Under the pieces are notes generated by a model, which was not told the DNA's origin, did no database searches, and worked only from the letters and a program-made list of their open reading frames with translations. From Orbicella franksi (lineage: Eukaryota): a stretch of 64,000 nt of DNA. The position numbers and the translations under genes were made by a program. The number at the start of each line of letters is the position of its first letter. Position 1 is the stretch's first letter. The stretch covers positions 43,710,001 through 43,774,000 of the forward strand of contig OZ116698.1 of assembly GCA_964199315.1 (NCBI GenBank), in the 5' to 3' direction. Below, one piece after another: positions 46,115 to 64,000 of this stretch.

Positions 46115-49113
46115 TCAGTACAGATCTTTGTGCAGTTTGTGCCATTTTTCAATGTGTCTGCTCGGTGATTCAATCATTGACTTCCACTGCTCCTGCCCAG
46201 AATCAAACGAATCAAATCCAAGAATAACCGTTCCCAATCCCCCACCGCCAACGTTGATCTCGGAATGATTGACAATCTTGAGCACTACGGTAGTAAGAGA
46301 TATCTGGTCAGCGGACACATTGAAGTTGAACTTTTCATTGAACACCGGATTGAGGCTGCGTCTTTTGACACGTGTGTTGGCTTTGGATAAGCGGACGCCA
46401 TCACAGTACAGGGCGAGCTTAACGTAAGGGTCTGCAGAAGGAAAAGCATTCAAAGTTAAGTTGGCTCTCACTTATTGCACAACCATACCAACTTTTCCTA
46501 TGAACATTGGCACTGGATTGTAAAATGGAGAAAGTCTGCAATTCGTTATCGATCGTTATGTGACTTGTATTTTTCACCATTTATTGATTGGGGAGTTATA
46601 AGTTATCTTATTCTACATGTAGTTTTACTTTTATTTTTATTCTGTTTTTGCTTTTTGAAATCAATGCCTTCGTAGGTGCCCGCAGTAACTTACCTGTGCG
46701 GTCAGCCGTTGCCTTTGGTAAGCCGCGAATCTTCGTGACTGTTACAATGAGTCGGCCGCTGATTGGTCGAAAGCATAAAGAAACACAAAGCTCTCCAAGG
46801 TCGTCTGCCTCCATCTTGAAATTTAAGAGAATAAAGATGTGGGTTTGTGAGATTAATATCAAATCTAAGAAATGATTTCCGACGAAAAATTTTGAGAAAA
46901 AAAAAAAAAAAAAAAAACACGTAAAGAATCTGAAGGACAATTTACCGGGTTTGTCAAAGGTCGCAGGCGCGAAATTCAATAATTTTCGTATTTTACAAAG
47001 TGGTTTTAACTTACTTTAAGCGCAATCTCTGTTTTTCTGTAAAGATCTACGAACGAGAGGCAACAGGCAATTAACAGAAAAAGCTGACTACGGTAAAACA
47101 AGACGGAACACAAGGAAACCGACTCGTCCCCAGTTTTTGCACGGCCGAATTTCTTCGGCTGGCAGTCTTAGTGTGAATGTCACCGATAAATCATCCCCTT
47201 ATTGAACAAAACTTAAATTGAAACGGACGAAGATAAGTTTTGACAATAATTTGATAAACAAAGCGTAACTGAAATGGCCACAAGACAGTTTCTTCCTAAT
47301 AGTTCGCATACCCAAAAGGATAGAGAAGCATTGAGAGGTAAGCCTCTGCCCTTCCCTCGACCGTCCTTTCTCAACATTTTGAGCCTTGCATTCTCAGACC
47401 CTTGCTGCAGTGTGATCTAGTCAACTTACCCCGTAGGGATGCGGAGGTGCAAGATACAGCCATTTGGTGATTGAGAACGAGGCTCTGTTTTCCATCAACT
47501 TCAACTCTGACAAGGGGAAAAGGATCTCTCCTATGACGTCATCACCATAACGGTCTTTCAATTTGTCGTGAAAATTCACCACCCTGAACTTAAGCTCGTA
47601 TTCTTTGATTCTGTCTTTTGAGAAACCTGAGATGACAAATGTCTCGTTAAAAATAGGGTCTGGTGTTCCTTCGATGATCTTGGTGCGTTGCCAACAGTAT
47701 TGCTGCGGGAGCAGGGATATCTTCACCAAAGGGTTGATACCTTCCTTATTGTCAGCTATGGGAAGATCGACCGCTTTTATGATGTTCACTTGCAGTTCTG
47801 TCTTAGCGACATTGTAGTGAAGCGCGAAACGAATCTTTCCAAGTTTACCATCTGTATTGTCAGGCGAAGGTGTTCTGTCTTCACCTATGAAGCCAACTTC
47901 ATTTAAGTTTATCTCCCTTGAATTGCTTTCTGGTAAATCTAATCTCTTCTTTTCAGGCGTCGCTGGAATATTAGCGCCAGAATTTGCTTTCTTTCTTTTC
48001 GCAGGGCTGTTTTCATCCCCAGAAACGCCAGAATCCTTGTCTTGTGTAAAACTTTTCTCTTCTCTGTCGACCTCCTCTTCAGTCTTATCCAAATTATCCT
48101 CAAGTGACGCATGCGTACTAGAGTTAGAGTCTTCAACATCCGGGGCACTCACTGGAGATTTCTCACGTGACCTGCTATCTGTCTCTTCCCCGGATAGGGA
48201 GCTTTCGTCAATGTAGGTTTTTGCATTACCATTCACAACATCGTTAGAATAGCTACATAAACGATGATAGTAGTATTTTGTCGGAGGAGGACAACCATAA
48301 CTACGATTCTTCGTCTCTTGAACGTTCAAAGAAACGGTTTTAGGGAAGGACGAATCCACGACTTTGTCTCCCATAACAACTTGAATCTTTTCCGATGCTT
48401 CCTTCACCGCCTTTTCTCGTGAACGTTTACCCGTTAAATTCTTGTACGCGCTGACTCCCAGAATTATAAACAGGTAGCCGAGAGCGAGGCCAATGAGAAT
48501 TGGCAAAACCAGGATGCCAAAGAGACATAACAAACCCGTGTTGTTAGAGGCAAAACGCGTCATAAAATTACCTGATTGTGGCTTACTGCGAGGATCAAAA
48601 TCTAAAAAAAAAAAGAGAGAGCAGAAAAGTTTGTGCGTTAAATATACAATAAATATTGGGATTCCCTCAACAATATTTAAATGTCGGTAACCTATATTAT
48701 ATTTCATATTTACAAAGTGTAAAGAGGTTTTTGAAGTTTTTACAGTTTTTGCAAGCTGCTATATATATCGTGATCGGTCAGTTCAACACGAAAATAAGCG
48801 ATATAATCGCACAATAAAATGGCTATTTTATTCCTACTGAGATTATAAATCAAAATATAGTTTATACCCACATTTACCAACCGACGCAACCGAATTTGCA
48901 ATTCCCGGACCAATTATTTGAAGAGGGCTCGTAAAAAAAAAATCAAAGCGACTGCGAGAAAATTCAAAGGACCTAAAATGACGGATGAAAAGATGACATT
49001 GAAACGGTTAACTTAATTCAGTAATGAAATATCTTACCGCGTGTTTTTCTGTTATTGTTTTCTGCTCTGGCCGATTTATAATATCGCTGTGAGCTCGACA
49101 GAAGAGGTGCCAT
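46115..49113 (-). CDS. Synaptotagmin-like protein A (TM + C2A + C2B), ~561 aa; exons 49113-49038, 48601-47430, 46814-46694, 46431-46115
   Basis: All introns are GT-AG and the phases join (1,0,1; 1686 nt total). TM LLCLFGILVLPILIGLALGYLFIILGV. C2A LGKIRFALHY...DPIFNETF. C2B LGELCVSLCFRPISGRL...DPYVK...LNPVFNEKF...KWHKL. Confidence 0.88.
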
Positions 49114-50699
49114 GATATTTTCTGGAGTACACACAAGACCAGTCGAGATCAACACGCAGTTTAGCCTCGCACATTGCCACTATATCGCATATAATTTTAG
49201 CCTTTGCGTATAAATTCACTTCTCTCTTATCAATTCATGATCGAATCTCACTCGCATTTTCATAAGACCAATTTTCAGCGGGATGCTTCACAATTTTACA
49301 CAATTTACGTTGTCGCATTGTGAATAATCATTTACATTTGCATATGAAAAGATCAACGTGTCTATTTTTGTTAGTTTTTTCGGCCGAGGCAATTGTTTTA
49401 CAGTTTGCACAGGTGGAATGCGGTCACTCATTGCTACAATAACACGATAGCCAATACAAACACTTGTGAAACTGTATAAGTATGTTCACATCAGACCAGG
49501 AGATACATGTCAAATGAAATTTTCTACCCTTTTCATTGGAAAATATATTCGAAAGTAAATTGTTAAAATTAATGCTCTGAGCATGCATGCAGGAGAGTTC
49601 AATTGCTGTTGCCAAGTTAACAACATACATTAGCTTCGGAAGCTGTCAGATATAAAGGAAAAAAAACAGCCCGAACTAACACAAATTTCTGTCTCAACTT
49701 TTAATTTCACCTTCTGGGAAGACCTTTAAAAACACTCTCCTCCCATGTCCTCCGACTAGTATTGGAAAGAATGATAGAAATTAAGTGTGTGCCAGGATGG
49801 CTTCGTAAGTCATATTTCCTCAACGTGTATTTTTAACCGTTCTTTCGATAACAAAATATTATTCTTAACTCTTTCCGCCACTAAAGCGTTATTTCTATTA
49901 GCGCCATCTACCATTCGCTAACTTCATAAAATCCACTTTGGCGCCAAAATCGAGTAACTCACTATGATTGGTCAGTATGTAGTGAAATGTTTTGGCAGTG
50001 GCAGACAGACTTGCTACACTGCTTCAAATCGAGACTGCTACAGCTGATTTCGAGAGCTCAGTCAGACAAAATTATTTTCTCCGCTTAATATTTCATCTTT
50101 GAACTATGCCGCATTTGGGCTCAAATTCATTTGGAAAGCATTCATTCCGTACTTCAACCATCAAAACTATGACAACGCTTGTATGAAAAAAAGGTCTTAG
50201 AGTATTTTCAATAACTGTTTGTTGAGAGTCAAAGATTGGCGTCGGCTTCATAAATTAAGGAAACTTTCCTCTATAAACTTAACTGCAGCACTTCATATAG
50301 TATAATTAATAATTCCCGCACAAAACGAACAAAGGCCAAGCAACAAAACGATTAGAGATCAGTAATACATTACTTTAGTGTCTATTTGAATTGTTACTCA
50401 AAGTCTCAAGTAAATATCTGTTTATGACTTCAGAACTATCACAAACCATCTCCTGAAAGCTGGTTTTCAGCGTATCAAGAGAGGAAAGTAAAGAATTAAA
50501 ATTATAATTCATTGCTGGTTTAACGCCATATTTCTTTGTTTAGAACTAAATTAGTCGCCGCTGCAATGGTTCTGCAAAACTCTCTGCAAAACAATTATCG
50601 CTAACTAAATCAAGCGTTCTAGAATTAGCTTTAGCTTGCTAAATCAAGCGTTTCTTACCCTTAAAAGTAGGTAGCGTCATGCTTGGGGAATCTAGAGAT

Positions 50700-50770
50700 T
50701 GCCGCCATTTCATCATGGCGTCCAAACAAAGGAATCGATCCTCTTCCACAAGAAGTGACGTCATCATGGC
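50700..50770. promoter_or_regulatory. CRE and YY1-like motifs in the divergent intergenic region; second CRE at 51399-51406
   Basis: GCCGCCATTT 50701-50710, TGACGTCA 50756-50763 and 51399-51406, CACGTG ~51455. Confidence 0.35.
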
Positions 50771-51534
50771 CACCGGCAGTGATCTGCGGGTCCTGTCGCT
50801 TTCATCTCAAGCGCAGGAACGTAGCATGTTACAAATATGTTATAAAAGTGCACTGAAATGCGCCAATACGATGTGGAGGGTGTTTCCAAGATTTACAAAG
50901 CGAATAGAAACCGGTGCTACATGAACTAACCTAAAAAGCTTTAATAACACAGGCTTTACATATTACACGTTGAGAGAGTTGAGAGCAACCGCACTGAGAC
51001 ACATACAAATGCCTTTAGACTTAATATACAGTCCAAGTTAGTCACTATCATAAACCGTACGGAAAACTCTGCGCCTAGGGTCCAATTTCCTCGCGGTGTT
51101 AAACATGATCTTCTTTGGCTCTCATATTTAAAAACGCATGAAGCGTGCTACCGAAAAAAAAGCAAACTTCAAATCACCACTTAAACAATTAAACAGAGAC
51201 AGGTGGATCTATTTATTTCATTTACACTTGCTTGTGATGAAAGATCACACGATTTCTGTCTCTAGAATTTCAATTATCTTCGGAAGAGACACTAGCAAAA
51301 TCGGGGACAAGCGTCTCTGTACCAGAGAAGACTGAGTGAGCAAGATACTTTTTGGTGCTCCTTTGGCGCGGAAACGATGGAAATGAAAGCAAAGTTTATG
51401 ACGTCACTGTTGCCATAACTACTCTGAAGTGCCTTTCTCACGCCACGCGCGACACGTGACTGCTGGGGTGAAGTTCAAGTGGAAGATGCTGGAGGAGGAC
51501 GGCGGAAATTTTAACGGGGTGTTCCCTTTGGATT

Positions 51535-54500
51535 ATGGAAATACTGTCAAATGGAACTAAACAATACGCTTTGAGTAAGTATTGCTTAAATCTTTTACTT
51601 CGTAAAATGTTATGAAAGCTATAGGGGTACATAGTTCGACCTAGAACAACGTTATATTCATTGTAAAATTTGCATCCCATACTGAAAGAATTTGTCTGTG
51701 CAAATGCTGCTTGAACTTTTGTTCCACCTTGGTTGGACAGTTAAGTTCCTTTATGTAAGTTTAATCATTTCTAACTTAGCTTTGCATGAAAGGTTCTGCA
51801 AGCTTTCTGCTACAAAACAGAATAACCTGCAATGGAAAATTTCACATTTTCTTCAGGGTACGAGAGTTGTACGGTTACAGCAATACATATGTTTACCTTT
51901 CGAGTAACTATTTTCTGAGACTAAACAATTTGGAGATATGGTGCTAAGCGACAGATTTGCTTGCAGATGTTTAATGTGAAAAGCATGTTAGAAACAGAAC
52001 AACAGAAATACTATTATTTTCTTTGTACATTTGAGCTTTTGCAGCTACGCCCTGCATGGGATGGTGTTTCCCAAAAGGGCGGCATTACGTACAGAACTGA
52101 ATTGGTTTACCTTAGATTTCTTAGGCTTTATTTACAACTATAAGCATTCGGTTATATATGACTTTTGACCATTTTTATTCACCTCTTTCATGCTGTAGCT
52201 CAAACAATTTGCAATTACTTGATTTACGAAATAAAAGATTTCGTCCTGACAATTTTTGTGCCGTTCTGATACGGCAGGTGGAGTGACAGGTGGCAACCAG
52301 CCGAGTTATGTTTCGGGTATAACAATCAGATGGCTTTTATTTTAAACTATCATCTAATTAGCAAATTTCAATATGATCAGGAAAACACTTTTAGATAATT
52401 GCTAATTGCTGATCAAAAATATTTAAAACATTATATAGCCTGAAATGAATTGATTTTAAGCTCAGGGTAAATATACCCGGGAACTAATATTTATTTTGAA
52501 CCCTCTAATATGTAATTGTTACATGATTGCTGCTGCTCTGTGAAACATAGAGTTTAAATATTATTACAGAACCATTCTAATGCTTTTAAATATAAAGTTA
52601 AAATATAAGACTTGAGGAAACCTGTATTTCCAAACTCGGTCCATTTTGCTTCCGTACAATCACGTTATGTTGTATTCAATCAGCTGTGGTTTGTAACATG
52701 ATATTAAAAACGTTATTCTATACTTAATAATATCATCTAAATATAGGCAAAACAAAGACAAAATGGAATGCGATTATTGGAGTGATTTATTTTAAAATTG
52801 AATGTTTCCTCTAATAAAGTATTTCACCGAACTTTTTTTTTTACAGATCTCTCGGACCAGTCCCCTGACGAAGCTGACGTCATAGCACAGGAAAACTCGA
52901 CTGACGTCACAGCGTTTCTTTTTCCCGCCATTGGCGCTGTGCTTATGCTCATGTTTGGTGGGTTATTGTTTTCAAGCGGAACATCCTTCAGTAAATCTAA
53001 AGCAATGTCCGACCACAGGTTCAAACGAAAATTTGAACAGCAGTATGGACGAAGGACAATACGTTTTCATAACATACCAGACAAGATTGCGAAAGAGCCG
53101 TCGTCTGTTCTACAACAAGAAAATAATGACGTTGTTGATGCTGTGATGAAAGAATATCAAGATTTACCGCAGTACCAACCGCTCAGTGGATTAGCTGGCA
53201 ATATGGCTGGATTACGCAGGCAAACATGCGCAGTAAATCTTATTCGACCAGAAGTGACAGAGAGGGGAGTAAGTCCGATCCATTTGACGGCAAGAGAATA
53301 CACTTCGGATTACGACAATCCGTCGTATAAAGATAAGGACAGTGAGGCGGAACATGAAGATGATGTAAACAAGAAAAGCTCGCTTACTATTACGCTTCAA
53401 AACAAGGATATTGTCGTTGAAGATGATTTTACGCAACGAAATAGCGCTACATCTAGTGGCATTGGTACAAACTCACCAGACAGCTACGAAATTGATAGTT
53501 TAGAAGAATTTCCTGCTAGTAACAACGATTCTCTCGACCTTGCTGAAGCAGAGTTTCCTGGGTTACGAGGCGGAGCTCCTTTAAATGACGGCACTCGCCT
53601 GTCTGTACATGCTTATGACCGTGGGGTGTACGGTGGGGGGCGATTAAGTGTGCTGGAGATGGAGAGAGCGCCTAGCTCCATGTGTTTAAGGGGTTGTAGC
53701 TGTCCCATGCATAGAACAGAGGGTGGGAGAATGGACACCAAACGGAAGGATGCTCGAACTAGCGATGAGCGACTCACTTGGGGTGATATTGCACTAAATG
53801 TAAACGGTAATTTGACCTTGGAGAACGAAAGTGACGTTAGCAAAGCGTGTGGTAATATGTTAAGGCTCGCTACTCCATCAGCAGAAATATCAGGTCCGCT
53901 GACTGCAGACAACATGCGAGAGATGGATCAAAGTCCGTTACGGCGAATGGATTTGGAGAAGTGGCTTCACGATGTGGAGAAGTCCCGCAAAACAGGCGAG
54001 GTAGTTTACGGTGAAACGTTAGAATTCCCAGATGCGAAAACAGACAAGCGTCGCAGAGATTACTTGACCACACAAAAGAAAGAGTTTGTGCCTAGTCGAA
54101 GGAAAATGCGAGCACCACTTCAAGAAAGTTTACAGCTGTTGAAAAAGTTGCAGCTTGTTGCAGACAATGATTTGGTTCCAGCGCAGAATCCAGTCCACCT
54201 CGGCGGTCGCGCAAGCTGCTTGGACACTGTGAGAGCACCAAGCTCGCTATGCCTTTGTGGAGGCCAATGCAGCGTGCATGGTCAGAATGAGATAACCTCT
54301 GACCAGTGTAGTGCGCCAGTGAATGTAATTGAAGATGACACTGAAACTGATGAGAGTACTGAAGTTGCGAAAGGCAGCCATCAGCTTAATTCAACAAGAA
54401 CAGAACGTATCACAAAAGGCGGAAGACAGAGTACTTTGAATCTTCTTCGCGCGTCAAGTGGAATGTGTATTCATGGCCCTACATGCACGGTTCATTGCCA

Positions 54501-55872
54501 CAAAATGGGAAATGCTGAGTCATCGATACCAGAATCTAGGATTGAGAGTGGGAGAAGTCAAGTGCTTACTCAAAAGCAAGATACACATTCCGAATTAAAA
54601 GAATTGAGAGGAGCCAGCGTGTTTGGTGAATCGCAAGTTTCACTCACTTACAACACATTGAATAATCAAGGAATTGGCGATTGCGCACAAGAAGAAAGCG
54701 TCTCTATGACAACGGAGTGCAGTGAAAATGAACAGCGTGGAGCGAGCTCCTTTGGAAATTCACGCTCATCAAAAACTCAAGAGATCAATGATCTAAACAC
54801 TAGAGGTGCTAGCAGTTTTGCAGAACAGCCTCTGAAACAGTTGCATGCTAACTACAGTCATGAAATGAACAGTATCCAATCATCTTTGGGCGAAATTAGG
54901 GGCGCCAGTGGTTTCGCATCGCTGGATGAAAGTATTGCGGGCACATCGAGTGTAACGTTAAGTTTTGCAGTGGAATCTGACGTCGAAGGTTTGAGCACTG
55001 ATAACTCTTTGATGGAGAGAAAAAGGGCTATAAGTGTAGAGACATCTGTTGAAAGCGGCAGAGCCCCTGATCGAAAGCGTGGCTCCAAAAACACAGCCAA
55101 AGCACCTGTGAGCCCCACAGAGAAACAGAACTATCATACGACCACGTGGAAAACTGAAGACAAGGAAAACCTTGTTGAACCAAAAAACAACTTGTTCATT
55201 AGTCGCGACAAAGGTTGTAAAATTGGAACAATTGCTCGTGCAGAAAAGATGGATTTTAGCGATGAACAAAAGCAACACTTCAAACCGTTTGACGAGCGCA
55301 TTCTTAAAGTGGGTAAAGACACAACAATGATGTGTACACTGTTAAATGCACTTCGGCGAAATGGAAAACAACAACGAAAAGACACTGAAACTTCCAAGCA
55401 CAATGTTATTCATCGTATTGACGAAGAAAACGTTACGAATGGCAAGGAAACTTCAGTCGGGAGTCTTAAATTTTCAGTTTTGTATAAGGGAGCTGATTCT
55501 GGGACGCCTTTGCTTTACGTCACTGTTCTAGGTCTCGAAGGTGTGACAACTGAAACAGTTACGACAGACAGTACGGTTTATATAAAAGTTTGTTTATCTC
55601 CTAAATTCACAACATGGAGACGAACAAGAGCTCTGAATGTTTCAGAGAAGCTGGAGTTTAAAGATCATTTTATTATATCAGGGGTGAAGCCAGTTGACTT
55701 GGAGGGAGCTATCCTTCGATTTGTCGTTGTTTGTGTCGGAGAAGATGAAAAAGTCATTGGTCAACTTGACGTGCCTCTTGACGAGCTCAAGTCGCGTGAC
55801 AAGTTTAAAAGGACTTGCGCGCTTCATGTACCTTATTGCGCAAGGAATGATGGGATTACTGAACTTGAATAA
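51535..55872 (+). CDS. Synaptotagmin-like protein B (TM + very long linker + single C2), ~1021 aa; exons 51535-51574 (tentative), 52847-55872
   Basis: 3-kb open exon after a strong acceptor (T-run, acag| 52846). TM FLFPAIGAVLMLMFGGLLF. C2 GSLKFSVLY...VYIKVCLSPKFTTWRRT...IGQLDVPLDEL. Phase-1 upstream exon MEILSNGTKQYAL|GTAAGT. AATAAA at 56189. Confidence 0.8.
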
Positions 55873-57358
55873 TGAATGAGTAACTTTGAAAAAGAGGCTC
55901 CATTAGGGGGTGGGGGTGGGGTGGTCTGAGTATCCCACATTCGGTTAATTTTTGACTTAAATATCCCGTACCATGAGTTCAAGTAGCAAAAACTAAGGAT
56001 TCGTTACTCGATATCCTGTTTTATCTGGTCTAGATCTCCCGTTAATAATTTCCCCCAAATATCCTGTATCCTGTTAATTTTTTACCTATTAACCCGTATC
56101 CCGAAAAAACTCTAATAGGGCTTCAAAAACAGTAAACCGTTCGAGCTGTACGTTAAATTAAGCATGATTTTCACCTTTATAGCAAAGTAATAAAACTTGA
56201 TATGACAAACAATATTACGTACTTAGTGTGCCTTTTAAAAGAATTCATTTAATATCTTCAGTTTGCGTCAAATGGAATTAGTGTAGACGTTCTTTGTATT
56301 GTGCACTTACAGAATTTTCACACCACATCAGCAAAAAGTTGTATACCTTTCAATAAGGAATTAATTAAGACAGGACTAATTGAGTTTGCTAAATTGAAAC
56401 TTGAATTTATTTACTACAAATCAGAAATTTTGAAAGTAAATAACGAACACTGCCTTCTGTATGCTTTTACCGAGCTTCTCTTTACGCCATCGCGGAAAAA
56501 ATAAGATTGAGCGATGCGTTTGTTGTTTTAAATGAACTGCGAGAAAGGTGTCTTCGTTTGATCAATTGAGCCACGAGAAATGTTCGCTCATTTACTTTTG
56601 GCCTGAATTTCTTTGTTGCTTAGAAGAATACATCATTCCCACGACAACAACAATGACATAACCGCCTATTATCTGTTTCTTACTTTAAAAGAGGCACTTT
56701 ACCGGCAGGTGCTTTGCGACGATAATTGCTATTTCTCTTGGAATGTTTTCTAAACCCGAAAATAAATTAACAAAGCAATTCACTGCAAGACGTCGAAACT
56801 CGATGAAAAAGCAAACTCAAGGATTACAAACCAACTTTAAAATGAGCGGGAGTGAAGTTTTATTTACACGACATCGACCTTTTAAAACTCGATCAAAATT
56901 TTATGATGAGAATACAGAAGGAAAGGGTGTTGAAAAGACAGATTGGGACCAAAACATAATTTGACATTGATTGAATGATAGTTTAATTTACGTAAAGAGA
57001 AATACGATTTATTCCGGGATGAAATATCTATTGCTCTGTGACGCAAAGTGTCACGAATCGAGTGGGCTTGTTTTGCATAACAACCACTGTACTGTCACTG
57101 TTGAAGCAAACAAGCAGAGCTTTACGCACGGATGAATGTACGATGTGAATGACAGACAGACACAAAAGGCTTTATAATTAGCTTTATTTAAATTCAAAAC
57201 TCCTTCAGCATATCAAAATCCTCGACCCCGCGAAAAGTCCAGGTCAGAAGAGTTGTCGACACGTCTTCATTTCTCAAGTTCCCGTTTGGCGGCTCAATCT
57301 TCCGCGACAGATCAACGTTTTTCAGCGCGAAAAACGAAACATGACTTAGAAAGTTCAA

Positions 57359-58389
57359 ATGACGGTAGGCACTCTAAAACAATGGCTTTTTAAACTTTCG
57401 CGTTTTTTAAAGTCTTGGGTTACCCTTGTTCAAAGTTTTAAACTAATCACTATTCGTCATTGTGTTTTCAGGACTCGAGTGTTCTTGGCGTGATTCTTGG
57501 CTCAGTGCTTGGTTTTCTGGCCGGCGCAATAGTGGTGTGTGTTGGATATTTCGTTTACGCCAGACGATCCAAGACATACAATCCACAGTCGCGCGATGTG
57601 CGCGCGAAAATTGATTATTACTCGGCGAGTAGTCCTGAAGGTGCTTTTCTCGTCGCGCAAACACGACCAGTTCAAGTACAGCCAAATGTGTACACGTTGG
57701 CCAAGTCCTCGGCGGAATCATACCCGGAAATTACCGAGCTAGATGATGGTGAACAACAGAGAATTCGAATAACCAGGCCGTATCAAACTGGCGCTATTAC
57801 CACAATCGACGAAGACGGCGAGGATGTCCAAGACGGTAGCGAAAGGCCGCAAAGTCTTGAGAGCGAGGCCATGACCGGTGGCCACAAACCCAAGCTAACA
57901 AAGCGAATGAGTTTGCCTACTACCTTAAAATCAGATGGATTAGTTCACCCAAACCCAGAGGAATTCTTTAGAAAGAAAAGTTCGACCGACGAGGAGGAAT
58001 GCCGGCTTGAGTTCTCGTGTTTTTACGACACGGCAAGTCGTGAACTACACATCACTGTAATTCAAGTTGTTGGGATTTCTACACCAGACGAGAGTTTCCT
58101 CCGCCCGCCAAACTGCAGTGTGAAAATGCGCATCTTGCCCGAGATGTTGTCCTGGCAGTGGACGAGGAAAATTTCTCGAACAACAAGCCCCGCTTTCAAC
58201 GAAACCTTTATTGTGCCTGGTTTTGTTCACAATAAGCTGCGAGAATGTACCGTACACTTTGTGGTGTTGGATTTTGATCATGTACAAGACAATGTTTATG
58301 TGATTGGAGAAGTTTTCATGCCGTTATCTGAACTAAGAGCGAACAGGCTGGAGAAAATTATCAAAAGGGTGAACCCACTTTCCTTCTAA
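57359..58389 (+). CDS. Synaptotagmin-like protein C (TM + single C2), ~307 aa; exons 57359-57364, 57472-58389
   Basis: ATGACG|GTAGGC, 107-bp intron, ttttcag|. TM VLGVILGSVLGFLAGAIVVCVGYFVY. C2 RLEFSCFYD...PAFNETF...VLDFD...IGEVFMPLSEL. AATAAA at 58956 and 58967. Confidence 0.82.
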
Positions 58390-59700
58390 AAATGTTTAAT
58401 AACAATTCTGTCCTAATTCCGCAACAGAGTGGAGTTTTCAGAACAAGGCCAATATGCTAAATAAACACACATAAGGCAAACAGGAAAAAATTCCTTTAAA
58501 TTTCATAGCTCATTAGCAATTTAAAATGCGTGCGAGGCAAATCAAAGTCGTTGAAATAATCTCAACGTTGTATTTATTTACGAAACAAGACTTAAAAATT
58601 TAATGTTAGCAATGTAACAGTTACAATTTGGACAAAGTTTCTCTTTATTTCATGTGTTACATTCTTTCAAGGGGTTTTTATAATATCTGAATAAGAATTT
58701 GCTGTGTAAATATTATTTAGATCTTCACCTGGTTTAGTCAAGCGAAACTTCTATGTTGTAGTTTTGTCACGCATTTCATCATCCAACTATCTGCTGTTAA
58801 AAAGTGAGAATTTTGCCTTAACATTTCTTGAAAACTTTGTTTTCCACAATACACGGGTACAATCCTTTGCAAAGAAATATTTGTATCTTTCTAACTTGCA
58901 TATATTATTATATATTGTGGCTCACAATTTGGGTTTTGTTAATTAGCTGACAGCAAATAAAAGTCAAATAAAACAAAAGTAATTGCAACGAGTTGTCTTG
59001 TTTGATTTTATGGAATTATAATCCCGTTTTTAATCTTCCAGATACAATAATTATTGCGGTAACGAAAAGACGTGGGCAGAGATGGAAACATCGTCATAAA
59101 TTATTCAATAATTTGTAATGAGCCTGAGTGCCAGTCCTCGAGAATTGAAATTTTTATCGTGGCTTTTTAGTGGTCAAAACTAACGTTTTCAATCCCAGTG
59201 TCATTGTGTCACTTCTTCCGAAATTTGTTTACGAACGGGTTATAATATTCTGCACAAATTATTGAGAAATTCCCGTCTCGAAAGAAGTCAAAGCCAGTTT
59301 CTCTCTTTGTTTACACTACACTCTTAAACCAGAATACGGTAAGGACACTTTTGGTGTGACCTTACCGGCTAGATTGTTTCAACCCTTCATTTACATAAGC
59401 CACAAGATTGTTCCAAAAACTTTCGTGAAGTATCAGTGCAGTGATTGTAGTGACCTCCAACATATAATATGATTTGATTTGGTATCACTACATACAGAAG
59501 ACAAAGAGTTGAAAAAAAAAAATTATAAAAAAAGTCTTTAGTAAGACTAATAATCACAAGCTTTTTAGGGTAGCAACGGTATTACAACTCTCTTCTATTT
59601 TTATCACAGCTTCCCTAATGCCCCTATGAGACCAACAGTCCGTCGCTTACTACCCACGAAATTAAAAAATAAGCCACAAACGCTAGCAGCTACATTGTAG

Positions 59701-59993
59701 GTAAAGTCTGCATGCGAGCCAAGTGGCCCATCAGGCCGGAGCTTATCCCGGTTTCCGTAGCATGAAGCGACTAGGAGTATTTCTACTCCCCCCTGGATGG
59801 GATGCTAGTCCATCGCAGGGTTACCCCCAGCATTAACTTCGCCGGTACCCATTTATACACCTGGGTGGAGAGAGGCACTGTGAGAGTAAAGTGTCTTGCC
59901 CAAGAACACAACACAATGTCCCCGGCCAGGGCTCGAACCCGGACCGCTCGATCCGGAGACGAGCGCACTAACCATGAGGCCACCGCGCCTCCT
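59701..59993 (-). mobile_element. Full-length tRNA-derived SINE with CORE-like central block, 11-bp TSD
   Basis: Minus strand head GGAGGCGCGGTGGCCTCATGG (A box) and GGTTCGAGCCC (B box), then TTGGGCAAGACACTTTACTCTCACAGTGCCTC. CTACATTGTAG at 59690-59700 and 59994-60004. Confidence 0.9.
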
Positions 59994-61009
59994 CTACATT
60001 GTAGAGACCTTGTCAATCATGTGCGAGCTGAATTTCACATCCTGTTATGCGGAAAAAAAACGCATAGGAAAGCTTACATTTACCAGAAAACTCTAAGAAT
60101 GTGCAAATTTATCCGGGATACTTTCATTGAAATGTTTCTCCTCTGTTGGACAAAGCATGACTTCCGCTCGAAGATTGACGGGCTAATTTTTTCGCACTAA
60201 CCTTTTTAATTTATTGCCTGTTATTTCGACCTCTGACTTTTAAAGCATTTCTAGCCTATCAATTTATACGTGTAGAGCTCTTCATTTCACGGCGAAAATA
60301 TTGATTCGTGAACAAACTGGACCAAAATTCTACGACCCCAATCAGTTATGCAATGGGTATGAAAATTGAACTGTCGCTTTATCCCGCAGCTGTCGACTTT
60401 TAATTTGACATTACTTCCCGCCTGAATAATTGAATATTAAATATACGTCTACTTATGAAATATGAGTTGATATTCTTTTCCCGTGAAGCCGCCGTTATGT
60501 GGGTGGTCACGCGATCCCTCCGTAACAAACGAAATCAGAGTTCGTAATTCGTTATAGAAGATTGGCAAAGTTAACTGAGGTTAAAAACTCATTCTCAATA
60601 CTTAAAGTCACTAGCCTTCTCCCATTCGTTTTCTTTATAAGGAATGTACTAAAGGCTTTGTTCAAACTGATTGGAACGCGGTACGTTTTCAGACGGTCAA
60701 AGTCACTTCCGGTGGCTTTAAGCGTGACAAATTTAATCGTTTTTTAAGAGACCTGATTGGTTACTGAAGTGAACCGGAAGCCAGTCTGTCCACAGAACAC
60801 GTAAAAACGGGAACATAATTTATTTTTGACTCTACCACTTTGCCATACGAGCGCGCTAATATCCAACGAAAATGTGACCTCGCACTTTCGACACCTATCT
60901 TCGCCCAAATCGTAAAATCTTTCTGTTTCTTTTAACCATGCAGAAGAATGTAGAAGGTTTTTGGTTCTGTTTTGATAATCGGCCGATGACAAACCGTCAA
61001 GTTTCCTAA

Positions 61010-63824
61010 ATGGTCAACCAAGGTAAGTGTTTCAGTCCTTTTTGTATTGTTTTACTCGTCAGTTGACAATATTTACAGTCCGCTGTAACAGCACTTTAAT
61101 CCTTATGTTTTCGTTTTGTTTCTTTAAGTTGTTTTGGCGGTTGGTTTGGGGCTGGTCGCTGGATTTGTCGTCGTAATTATCTACTTCATGGTACAGTTTA
61201 TTCGCAACCGTTCTGTGAACAACGAGTATAAATATAAAAAGCTGACTTCTGATCCGGCTTATGGGTCTCGAGCAGTTATCAAACAGGACATTCCACCGTT
61301 CTATATTCCACAGTCTGTTCCCGTACAACTCCAGCAACCGATAAGGAGTGAGAGATCGGGAAGTATTTCAAAGGATGACTATCGAAATGGACACTCACTT
61401 CTGTCGGCGACAGTTCACAGCGTCAATGTAAAAGGCAAAGCGGAAGATCGCGGGACGGGAATTCAACTGAACGCTATCAACACAGGTCCTCTCAGTCCGC
61501 CGCTCACTCCACGATCCCTAAAACCTCCCCGTAAAATTTCGCCGACGAAAAAGCAACTGCCCCAGAAAGAAAATCTCTCACTCCCTCAGCATAGAAAGGT
61601 CGCGGTTTACAAGAAATTTCCCGACAGCAATTTGGGAAAATTGGAGTTTTCCCTTTACTACGATCAATCGTTTCGTTTGTTGCAGATTTACGTTATCCGC
61701 GGGATAAAAATCACGAGTTCCGAGGACAATGTCCCACCCGATGTCTTAGTAATTGCATCGTTGAGTTTTAATAAGAATCAAATTTGGGAGCAGAAAACTC
61801 GAATGGTGAAGAATTCAAATGATCCGCAATTCAATGAAAAATTGGAAGCGCACGGGATAACCTCAGCAAAACTTCATGAAAGTACGTTACACTTTCAGCT
61901 CTTCAATGATGGCGCCAATACAATAATTGGGGAAGTTGAATACTCACTAAAGGAACTTCCTGCGAACAAGTTAACAAGTCAAATACTTCCTCTCATTCCA
62001 GTGGAAATAGATGAAACTTACTGCAATATTGAGGTACGTGCACTTAATAACAACATCTTATTTTCTTTCATTGCGTTACTATTTCGTGTCACTTTGTTTA
62101 TTTCTTTTCTTTTCTCATGGTCGCTTCGAATCAAAATGATTGGTAAAGTTACAAAATCTCTATAAGTAGAGAATATGAGCTTTAGGAAACCAGATATCAG
62201 AAACAACTCAGAGGAATCTTAATTAATTGAAGTAAAAGTGTTTTAACGGACCCAAATGCAAAACAGTCAAACTTTCCTCGTTCCAATCTATTCAAACTTC
62301 ACAAAAAGTTTCTCGCTTCAGTGCGCACTTTATATTTTTAGTGTCACAAAGGTTTTTTTTTTCCTGATCATAAATCGTATATAAATCTATCTTTTTATCT
62401 TTTAAAGGCCCCTTTTTTTACTTCATATTCATCATTTTAAAAGGCATTTTCACCAACATAAAATTTTAACTTTTTTCGAGTGAAAAAAAAATCACTGAAG
62501 ACATATTTCATGGGTAAAAATAGAGAGACATTCGGAAATTCGAGTTCCTATAGGACAATGAAACACGTCAGAAAGTCAACAAACGTGACGCAAATACATT
62601 ATTTTTCCTGCTTGCTGGAAAAATACACTACAGTTCGAAAAATTAGACAAATTAGGTAAACCCTGAAATGATGAGAGCTCGTAGTTTCAAGCACGTAGTT
62701 TCACATCCTTGCGTCTCGTTTATATCTGTTTATCAGTGTACATATGTCTCATGTATAAGGGTTGGGAAGCGTTTGGAGCTTAGTTTTGCCTAATTAAATC
62801 AAACAATTCCAGAACGAGCCGCTAGAGGGGACTTTAAATCTGAAAACGTCTTTATTTATTTGTTATTTTTGTAAACTATCCGAGAATGCACTCGATGTCT
62901 CATCGTCAAATACCAGATTACCGCATTGAAGGCGTTTTTGTAAACGCCCTAAAAGGTGGTGAACGATGAAACTGGCTAACTTCAATTCACAAAGTCCATG
63001 CAGCTAAAATACGCATGATGAGGCCATGAGTCGTGTAATTAAAACGGTAAAACCCTCATCACTGTAACATGTTTCATTTACGCTCAGTTTACAAAAATAA
63101 AAATGCCAGTTTATTGCTCTTAAAGAGCTTTGAGATAGAAGGGTATCATTTTTGACATTTCAGGGCATAGCTCTTTAGCTAGGCGTAACTCGCAAATTCC
63201 TGTGTATCAAAGAAACATTCTATGATTTGGTATTCGGTTTCATTGTAAGTAAGTTTGTAATTAATTATCTACATTTTTACACTTTTTGTGGTTTTTGTTT
63301 CATCATTCTGCACTGTTTGACATGGTCATGGTTACTGCACGTTCCCAAGTGACTAAAACAAAAACAAAAAAAGGAAAACAAAGAGATTTTCGATTGTTTT
63401 GACGAGGTAAGGTTACTCAAAAAGTTCAAGTGAAAGCCATTTGCTGATAGACAGAATTCCAACACGTTTTTTAATGCACAGAAGAGCAAAGAAGTCAAAA
63501 TAGCAGTATTCCAGCCACAATGATTACTAATGATCTCTATTTAAAGACAAAAGGGCTAGGTGTAATTACATGTGATGGGGCTCTTTTTCGTATTACGTCA
63601 CTGTAGAGTTCCAAGGTTTGCATCGTGGCTTCTAGACAACTGAAAATATTGAGAGTCTGAAATGGGTTTTGCCGTTTAATGTACTTGTCCTTTGTAACTG
63701 ACACTTCAAAACTCAAAGACTTCCACGTGTCACTCGTTTTTAAAGCAACACTTTTACCAACTTAAACCATAGAGTGAATCAATATTTCTTTTTGCAGACC
63801 GTTTGGAGTCCACAACTCTCTTGA
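61010..63824 (+). CDS. Synaptotagmin-like protein D (TM + C2); exons 61010-61022, 61129-62033, tentative last exon 63798-63824 (~314 aa)
   Basis: ATGGTCAACCAAG|GTAAGT, then tttaag|. TM VVLAVGLGLVAGFVVVIIYFMVQFI. C2 LGKLEFSLYYD...DPQFNEKL...IGEVEYSLKEL. Strong phase-0 donor GAG|GTACGT at 62034. Acceptor tttgcag| at 63797 gives TVWSPQLS*, followed by AATAAA at 63905. The 3' end is uncertain. Confidence 0.78.
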
Positions 63825-64000
63825 CGTCAGAATTCTATAGTAACCTAATACGAAAAAGAACCCCATTATATGTAAACCAAGCCTTTTTCTCTTTTAATAG
63901 AGACAATAAATACTCATTGTGGATTGTCTGATACTGTTGCCAATTAATTCGTGTGTCTTCAGAAGCATCTCTTCCTCGCGTGTGCCAAGCTCCGCCGGCT

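Follow-up and report, generated by a model that had tools for sequence, protein, structure and literature searches.

A probably ancient cluster of four synaptotagmin-like genes in hexacorals, with the second C2 domain lost from one member and probably from another

The synaptotagmin (Syt) family carries tandem C2A and C2B domains, and the closest described relatives of the locus reported here come from Nematostella vectensis, in which Syt24-43 have been catalogued as unique, divergent genes, 'some with only one C2 domain' (Craxton 2010, PMC2823689). Two of them, NvSyt41 and NvSyt40, lie on one scaffold (supplement, PMC2823689). The Syt18 group has members with tandem C2, with a single C2B or with none (PMC2823689) and is a precedent for the loss of one C2 domain in a lineage. 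We analysed a window of 64,000 nucleotides from Orbicella franksi (contig OZ116698.1, 43,710,001-43,774,000; positions below are counted from the first base of this whole stretch), which holds four Syt-like genes, here called A, B, C and D. Our reading, to which we give a probability of about 0.78, is that they form an ancient syntenic cluster of four paralogous Syt-like genes in cnidarians, at least in hexacorals, that C2B has been lost in C and in coral B, and that the proteins are likely Ca2+-independent.

The array is already present in catalogues and annotations and is not a new kind of system. NvSyt41 is the direct ortholog of A and contains its signature (CWQKTRIVED, PMC2823689), and NvSyt40 is the direct ortholog of C and contains the corresponding WQWTRKVSR (PMC2823689). 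In NCBI the A ortholog is named 'synaptotagmin-1 isoform X1/X2', the C ortholog 'synaptotagmin-4' and the O. faveolata D 'synaptotagmin-7-like'. A literature search found no paper on the four-gene cluster, on its conservation or on how C2B has been lost from its members; modestly new here are the retained microsynteny, the disappearance of C2B in steps and the fact that the single-C2 gene is so highly conserved. The tandem C2A and C2B were found in A, D and Nematostella B but not in C or coral B, and the latter two are therefore derived variants, not canonical Syt members. Like the bilaterian Syts that do not bind Ca2+ (Syt4/11 and Syt12-15), the genes combine an N-terminal transmembrane segment, a linker and Syt-type C2 with incomplete Ca2+ ligands; unlike these, C and coral B are entirely without C2B. 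They also differ from the Syt18 group, in which the retained single domain is C2B, as here it is of C2A type. Extended synaptotagmins, ferlins, MCTPs and Slp/rabphilin likewise combine C2 domain(s) with membrane attachment, but no SMP, FYVE/SHD or ferlin domain and no C-terminal transmembrane segment was found in A-D, and Pfam scans of A-D and their orthologs gave C2 alone.

Four long open frames occupy 46.1-62.2 kb, A on the reverse strand and B, C and D on the forward strand. Each begins with a hydrophobic N-terminal segment, followed by a long low-complexity/disordered linker and a Syt-type C2, and from these hydrophobic stretches an N-terminal transmembrane anchor is predicted for all four genes. 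The large exons are mutually related by tblastn, Pfam matches C2 twice in A and also in C and D, and a family profile, applied to the window and the 10 kb that follow it, matched exactly four exons of C2A type and two pairs of C2B exons. The first-pass annotation had described four related Syt-like genes with A head-to-head to B, C and D, and the open reading frames, Pfam, tblastn and the profile all bear this out. It had also given B, C and D a single C2 domain each. This holds for C, and for B as far as the DNA and the NCBI O. faveolata model show, but not for D, whose C2B exons lie past the window end; the count is one certain single-C2 gene (C) and one probable one (coral B), not three. 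The remark that a transmembrane segment plus a single C2 is atypical for synaptotagmins thus applies to at least C, A and D having tandem C2. The window and the Orbicella faveolata assembly GCA_002042975.1 agree at 98.7-99.7% identity. The paralogs A-D are mutually just 25-33% identical; the genes closest to C in the same genome are A, D and a Syt7-like gene, and no further close copies of C were found elsewhere in that genome.

The order and strands of the cluster, A(-)|B(+)C(+)D(+), are identical in coral and Nematostella. On Nematostella chromosome OW051989.1, A (512 amino acids, aa) is head-to-head with B (1506 aa), and C (308 aa) and D (413 aa) follow on the B strand; the O. faveolata B, C and D have 1022, 307 and 456 aa. 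The same plan recurs in two more divergent assemblies, ENA ERZ25073809 and GCA_949826985.1, whose C is about 30% identical overall to coral C. In ERZ25073809 the order is A-like (-), B-like (+), single-C2 C and tandem-C2 D, the B-like gene being recognised via an LQQ(E/D)xN(D/E)V(V/I)D motif and RGASxF repeats, and in GCA_949826985.1 C-like, B-like and A-like genes are present, the latter two head-to-head. In a maximum-likelihood tree of 56 C2 domains, composed without bilaterian Syt sequences, every gene has its own ortholog clade, with UFboot/SH-aLRT support of 94/93 for A, 100/100 for B, 95/94 for C and 93/86 for D. The C2A domains of A-D group apart from the cnidarian Syt4-, Syt7- and Syt24-like C2A (87/89), and the C2B of Nematostella B joins that of D (98/93). 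Given the conserved order and strands and one ortholog clade per gene, the duplications are ancient and the cluster predates the coral/sea-anemone split. The exon plan of A and D is common to other Syt genes of the same genome. It may be noted that a Syt7-like gene and a Nematostella-Syt24-like gene, located on a second contig at 30412000-30421999 and on OZ116698.1 at 31478000-31487999, encode the transmembrane segment, linker and C2A on a single exon and have C2B divided between two exons at the position used in A and D.

Gene C is certain to be a genuine protein with a transmembrane segment and a single C2. Its start codon (ATG ACG, 57359-57364, +) closes a 5′ exon that begins near 57200, and the splice joint 57364>57472 is seen in 26 raw RNA reads of one run and in one contig of another. 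The main exon (57472-58389, +) encodes the transmembrane segment, the linker and the single C2 with SWQWTR (Pfam C2, 3e-10; also covered by RNA) and ends in ...KRVNPLSF and a stop codon, giving a protein of 307 aa, the same length as the O. faveolata model. Raw RNA reads cover 57200-58950, at a depth of about 50 before the stop codon, about 60 after it and zero beyond about 58950, so that the 3′ untranslated region (UTR) is about 560 bases long and reaches to about 58950. Apart from the 5′ intron joint, the raw reads of one run gave no RNA joint at C; loose ends were listed there only with a support of at least about 20 reads, and a weaker end at 58371 would be missed. All 38 close relatives of C that were found have 213-365 aa, with proteins up to 540 aa being eligible, and the protein collection held no C ortholog with C2B. 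In an alignment, 18 hexacoral orthologs terminate at the same residue, with (V/I)NP(L/I/V)xx. Between coral and Nematostella the last six codons differ at four third positions while the peptide VNPLSF is identical, and this pattern of codons marks the C-terminal tail as translated. A C2B profile found no C2B-like exon in the C-D interval. In the AlphaFold model, residues 2-32 of C form a helix (pLDDT 80-93), and a C2 sandwich is also present.

When coral and Nematostella are compared, the C2 sequence is 86.5% identical in C but 67% in A, 38% in D and 33% in B. By this comparison the C2 of C is the most constrained of the four, which argues for a specific conserved partner. A bolder proposal would make C a hitherto overlooked, deeply conserved 'hemi-synaptotagmin' with an essential cnidarian-specific trafficking role, for instance in regulating its tandem-C2 paralogs or acting as their decoy, or would make B, C and D a partly variable-exon locus sharing the C2B exons of D; we regard it as unlikely.

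The full version of a variable-exon locus, in which the large exons of C and perhaps of coral B are spliced onto the C2B exons behind D in a protocadherin/UGT1A-like manner, is clearly less probable still. It draws on the NvSyt40 model, which joins the C exon (…KIVKR) to an exon starting the D C2B (TFGKLL…) (PMC2823689), the acceptor being the true start of the Nematostella D C2B exon. Further, B, C and D lie on one strand with one exon plan, a GT follows the KR codon of C in coral and Nematostella, and coral B has no C2B of its own. Against this, the RNA depth over C stays steady past the putative donor (about 50 to about 60) and into the 3′ UTR, the NCBI C models have 307-308 aa and no ortholog in the protein collection adds C2B, the six codons after the putative donor are constrained at the protein level, and GTGAAC and GTCAAT make weak donors. 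A single-C2 C is what the coral RNA reads and the current NCBI models give, unlike the published NvSyt40, whose C2B starting TFGKLL... corresponds exactly to the initial C2B exon of D, the adjacent gene; the published model probably represents a C/D chimera. A minor C isoform may be spliced to the D C2B exons. A structural argument against a splice after ...KR in C was dropped, as the last strand (EKIIKR) precedes that point in the model.

Gene D is a tandem-C2 gene, as follows from a 456-aa model, orthologs of 456-460 aa and mapped C2B exons. Its start codon stands at the end of a 5′ exon (MVNQ plus one base, 61010-61022, +) whose 5′ UTR begins at or before 60393, and the splice joint 61022>61129 is carried by 16 raw RNA reads and one contig of 1534 bases. 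The large exon (61129-62033, +) holds the transmembrane segment, the linker and a C2A with IWEQKTR matched by Pfam C2, and it ends at the donor GAG/GTACGT (GAG being the exon end) at 62034. By tblastn and the profile, the C2B exons map outside the window at window-equivalent 64785-64955 and 65843-66157 (+; contig 43774785-43774955 and 43775843-43776157), that is, they start 785 and end 2157 bases past the window end. The O. faveolata model ('synaptotagmin-7-like', 456 aa) continues into C2B, several of the orthologs with C2B come from short transcript-like contigs, and the C-terminus carries a WHxL-like motif (...EQWHPIQDYFVE). The 343-aa frame seen within the window is the exon read on into the intron. 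Transcripts that add a C2B exon, which the first-pass annotation had named as telling against single-C2 genes, were found for D in models and transcript-derived orthologs, and a C2B is likewise added in the Nematostella ortholog of B. The long intron of D contains a roughly 95-base inverted repeat with 79% identity between its arms (63515-63611 and 63830-63922), which may be a small foldback element. In O. faveolata the gene next downstream of D encodes a 411-aa product with a Hint domain.

These results bear on the reading of the first-pass annotation, taken here as a recent lineage-specific local expansion in which B, C and D all have a transmembrane segment and a single C2. Inside the window C2B exons are indeed visible in A alone, and the Trp motif is common to the paralogs. 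But the C2B exons of D lie just past the window and are contained in the 456-aa models and transcripts, the genes are conserved one for one in Nematostella and two more distant assemblies, and paralogs only 25-33% identical each fall in their own ortholog clade. The claimed expansion is contradicted by this synteny and by the per-gene clades, and we hold such a recent origin to be very improbable, somewhat more so than the variable-exon locus.

Gene B has its main exon at 52847-55872 (+) as an open reading frame that ends at the stop codon, the acceptor position being inferred; a short 5′ exon was not located. The exon encodes an N-glycosylation sequon, a transmembrane segment, a conserved motif (VLQQENNDVVDAV), Cys/His modules, RGASSF repeats and one divergent C2 (TWRRTR). 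The frame has 1024 codons and stops 12 codons past the last strand of this C2, and the NCBI O. faveolata model of 1022 aa shares the same stop codon. Orthologs of B have 955-1501 aa, with 1506 aa in Nematostella, and an open frame of about 1000 codons is kept across several coral lineages at 45-68% identity. Pfam did not detect the C2 in coral B at E<=0.1, and it was recovered otherwise: by Pfam on a B ortholog (31.7 bits), by the family profile and by a structure model, in which the C-terminal 140 residues form a C2 sandwich with pLDDT >90 that matches the solved C2 of KIBRA, PI3KC2alpha, DOC2B and Syt5 at TM 0.80-0.86. No C2B exon or remnant above noise was found in 55873-57360, either by a ten-sequence C2B profile or by tblastn at word size 2 with the Nematostella B C2B. 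Nematostella B has two C2B exons of its own that end in ...HKWHQIYK, which is WHxL-like. As coral B has no C2B while its Nematostella ortholog keeps one, the loss probably took place in the coral lineage.

It may also be noted that in the B linker (52950-55300) the orthologs share the motif VLQQENNDVVDAV..Y.DLPQYQP right after the transmembrane segment, several RGAS(S/A)F repeats and repeated GGRxS...APS..C..G..C..H modules. Coral and Nematostella have all three features in common, and a more distant lineage shares the motif and the RGAS(S/A)F repeats. In Nematostella B a 9-residue unit, IHGTACCER, is expanded about nine times.

That B and C are decaying partial duplicates of a tandem-C2 gene, either pseudogenes or truncated copies, is the least credible reading, for although both are without C2B, the coral B C2 escapes Pfam and B is weakly expressed, C is expressed, spliced, highly identical to its Nematostella ortholog and invariant at its C-terminus, and B has kept its long frame in several coral lineages together with a confidently modelled C2.

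Gene A was described in the first-pass annotation as a transmembrane segment followed by C2A and C2B, and this is how it reads, with C2B spread over two additional exons. The first coding exon of 22 bases (50659-50680, -; MTLPTFK and the first base of the next codon, with a phase-1 donor) was found by regular expression and translation and matches the N-terminus of the Pocillopora ortholog. The large exon (47430-48601, -), identified by its open reading frame, splice sites and Pfam C2 (4.8e-16), encodes a 31-residue hydrophobic anchor, an acidic linker and the whole C2A with CWQRTK, and its donor GT lies at 47429-47428. The first C2B exon (46694-46814, -; phase 0 in, phase 1 out) scored 1.4e-12 with the C2B profile and the second (46115-46431, -), which ends in ...IEKWHKLHKDLY and a stop codon, 2.9e-12 with Pfam C2. 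The spliced protein has 523 aa from an internal Met and about 543 aa with exon 1, and orthologs of 488-559 aa in Pocillopora, Montipora, Exaiptasia, Actinia and Nematostella support the model. A WHxL-like motif is present at the C-terminus (...EKWHKLHKDLY), as it is at the end of C2B in D and Nematostella B. The anchor (48440-48540, -) is unusually long at 31 residues, has a central Pro (GLLCLFGILVLPILIGLALGYLFIILGVSAY), is conserved among orthologs and has about 25-45 residues before it; it might form a hairpin or be tilted instead of being a plain transmembrane helix. The gap from the first coding exon of A (50680-50659, -) to the main exon of B (from about 52847, +) is about 2.2 kb, and this distance between the first known coding exons suggests that A and B share a bidirectional promoter region.

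Two sequence features of the C2 domains had been singled out as unusual. The first, a Trp ahead of the beta-4 T(R/K) strand, is retained by most orthologs of A, B, C and D, and the Syt4-, Syt7- and Syt24-like genes of this genome lack it. The second, the F-x-(I/V)-x-G motif, proved to be ordinary, since it is present too in common Syt4-like and Syt7-like C2A. We also read the five Ca2+-ligand positions by alignment to the Syt7-like C2A of the same genome, which as a control has D-D-D-D-D. The corresponding residues are D-N-N-H-D in A C2A, T-D-N-S-G in A C2B, T-T-C-G-K in B C2, D-N-D-D-Y in C C2, E-D-N-G-T in D C2A and T-N-H-G-V in D C2B. Each of the six domains of the cluster therefore has 0-3 of the five ligand aspartates, and the five acidic Ca2+ ligands of the sensor Syts (Syt1/2/7/9 type) are complete in none. 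Such incomplete sets point to Ca2+-independent membrane or partner binding, and judging from these residues A-D probably act as Ca2+-independent trafficking proteins.

No clear one-to-one bilaterian Syt ortholog of these genes is apparent from sequence, Atlas and fold searches, as the first-pass annotation had expected. The best solved matches of the C C2 by sequence are the C2A of Syt7 (1.1e-13) and Syt4 (6e-13), and by fold the C2A of Syt5, Syt1 and Syt7 at TM 0.80-0.89. The nearest Atlas clusters of D are Syt15 and Syt13, and fold matches in Swiss-Prot are Syt10, 11, 4, 15 and 6 at 18-22% identity. No single ortholog stands out in the Atlas and Swiss-Prot fold searches, which give a mixture of Syt15, 13, 5, 9, 10, 11 and 4. 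By sequence and fold together, the nearest named relatives are Syt7, Syt4, Syt15, Syt13, Syt10 and Syt11, at about 20-28% identity.

The most economical account of an ancient cluster with later loss of C2B is the following. The ancestor would have been an ordinary cnidarian-type Syt with a tiny 5′ coding exon, one exon for the transmembrane segment, linker and C2A, and two C2B exons; its tandem duplication, accompanied by one inversion, would have preceded the split between stony corals and sea anemones. Both C2 domains would have been retained in A and D. C would have shed its C2B exons early and then persisted as a very strongly conserved 'half synaptotagmin' of transmembrane segment, linker and one C2A-type domain, and B would have gained its roughly 850-residue linker and, at a later stage of the coral lineage, have lost C2B. 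In the cell the N-terminal helix would anchor the proteins in vesicle or organelle membranes, and the C2 domain(s) would bind acidic lipids or the fusion/endocytic machinery, as proposed for the mammalian Syts that do not bind Ca2+. Membrane cross-linking is attributed to tandem and not to single C2 domains (PMC2726287). Because of this the single-C2 forms, unlike tandem C2 pairs, would be unable to bridge two membranes and would bind one membrane or partner.

Some points weigh against this ancient, Ca2+-independent cluster. C retains 3 of the 5 acidic Ca2+ ligands, conserved in all hexacoral orthologs, and on these residues some Ca2+ binding by C may take place. Support for the A-D clade is just moderate, and going by the Atlas lead A-D may be orthologous to a bilaterian group that is Syt15/13-like. 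Expression of B is weak: the share of its words found in RNA contigs of several studies is at most 0.46, the RNA depth over it is 3-4 in two runs, and no read marks its 3′ end or excludes splicing to distant exons.

The spacer between C and D contains a tRNA-derived short interspersed nuclear element (SINE) at 59690-59995 (-), which is not part of the genes. It is about 295 bases long, with a tRNA-like head at 59923-59985 (Rfam tRNA, 25.5 bits), and at least 2242 candidate copies with 98-99% identity were counted in the genome; judged by this number and identity, the SINE family is very young and abundant. RNA depth over the SINE is very high and dominates that of the region. The O. faveolata assembly departs from the window exactly around the SINE (alignment break 59738-60753).

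The analysis corrects the gene models of this locus, D being a normal tandem-C2 gene. It further means that Syt-like genes can persist for hundreds of millions of years after the loss of C2B, inside a conserved four-gene array, and the array offers a natural comparison of one versus two C2 domains on the same membrane anchor.

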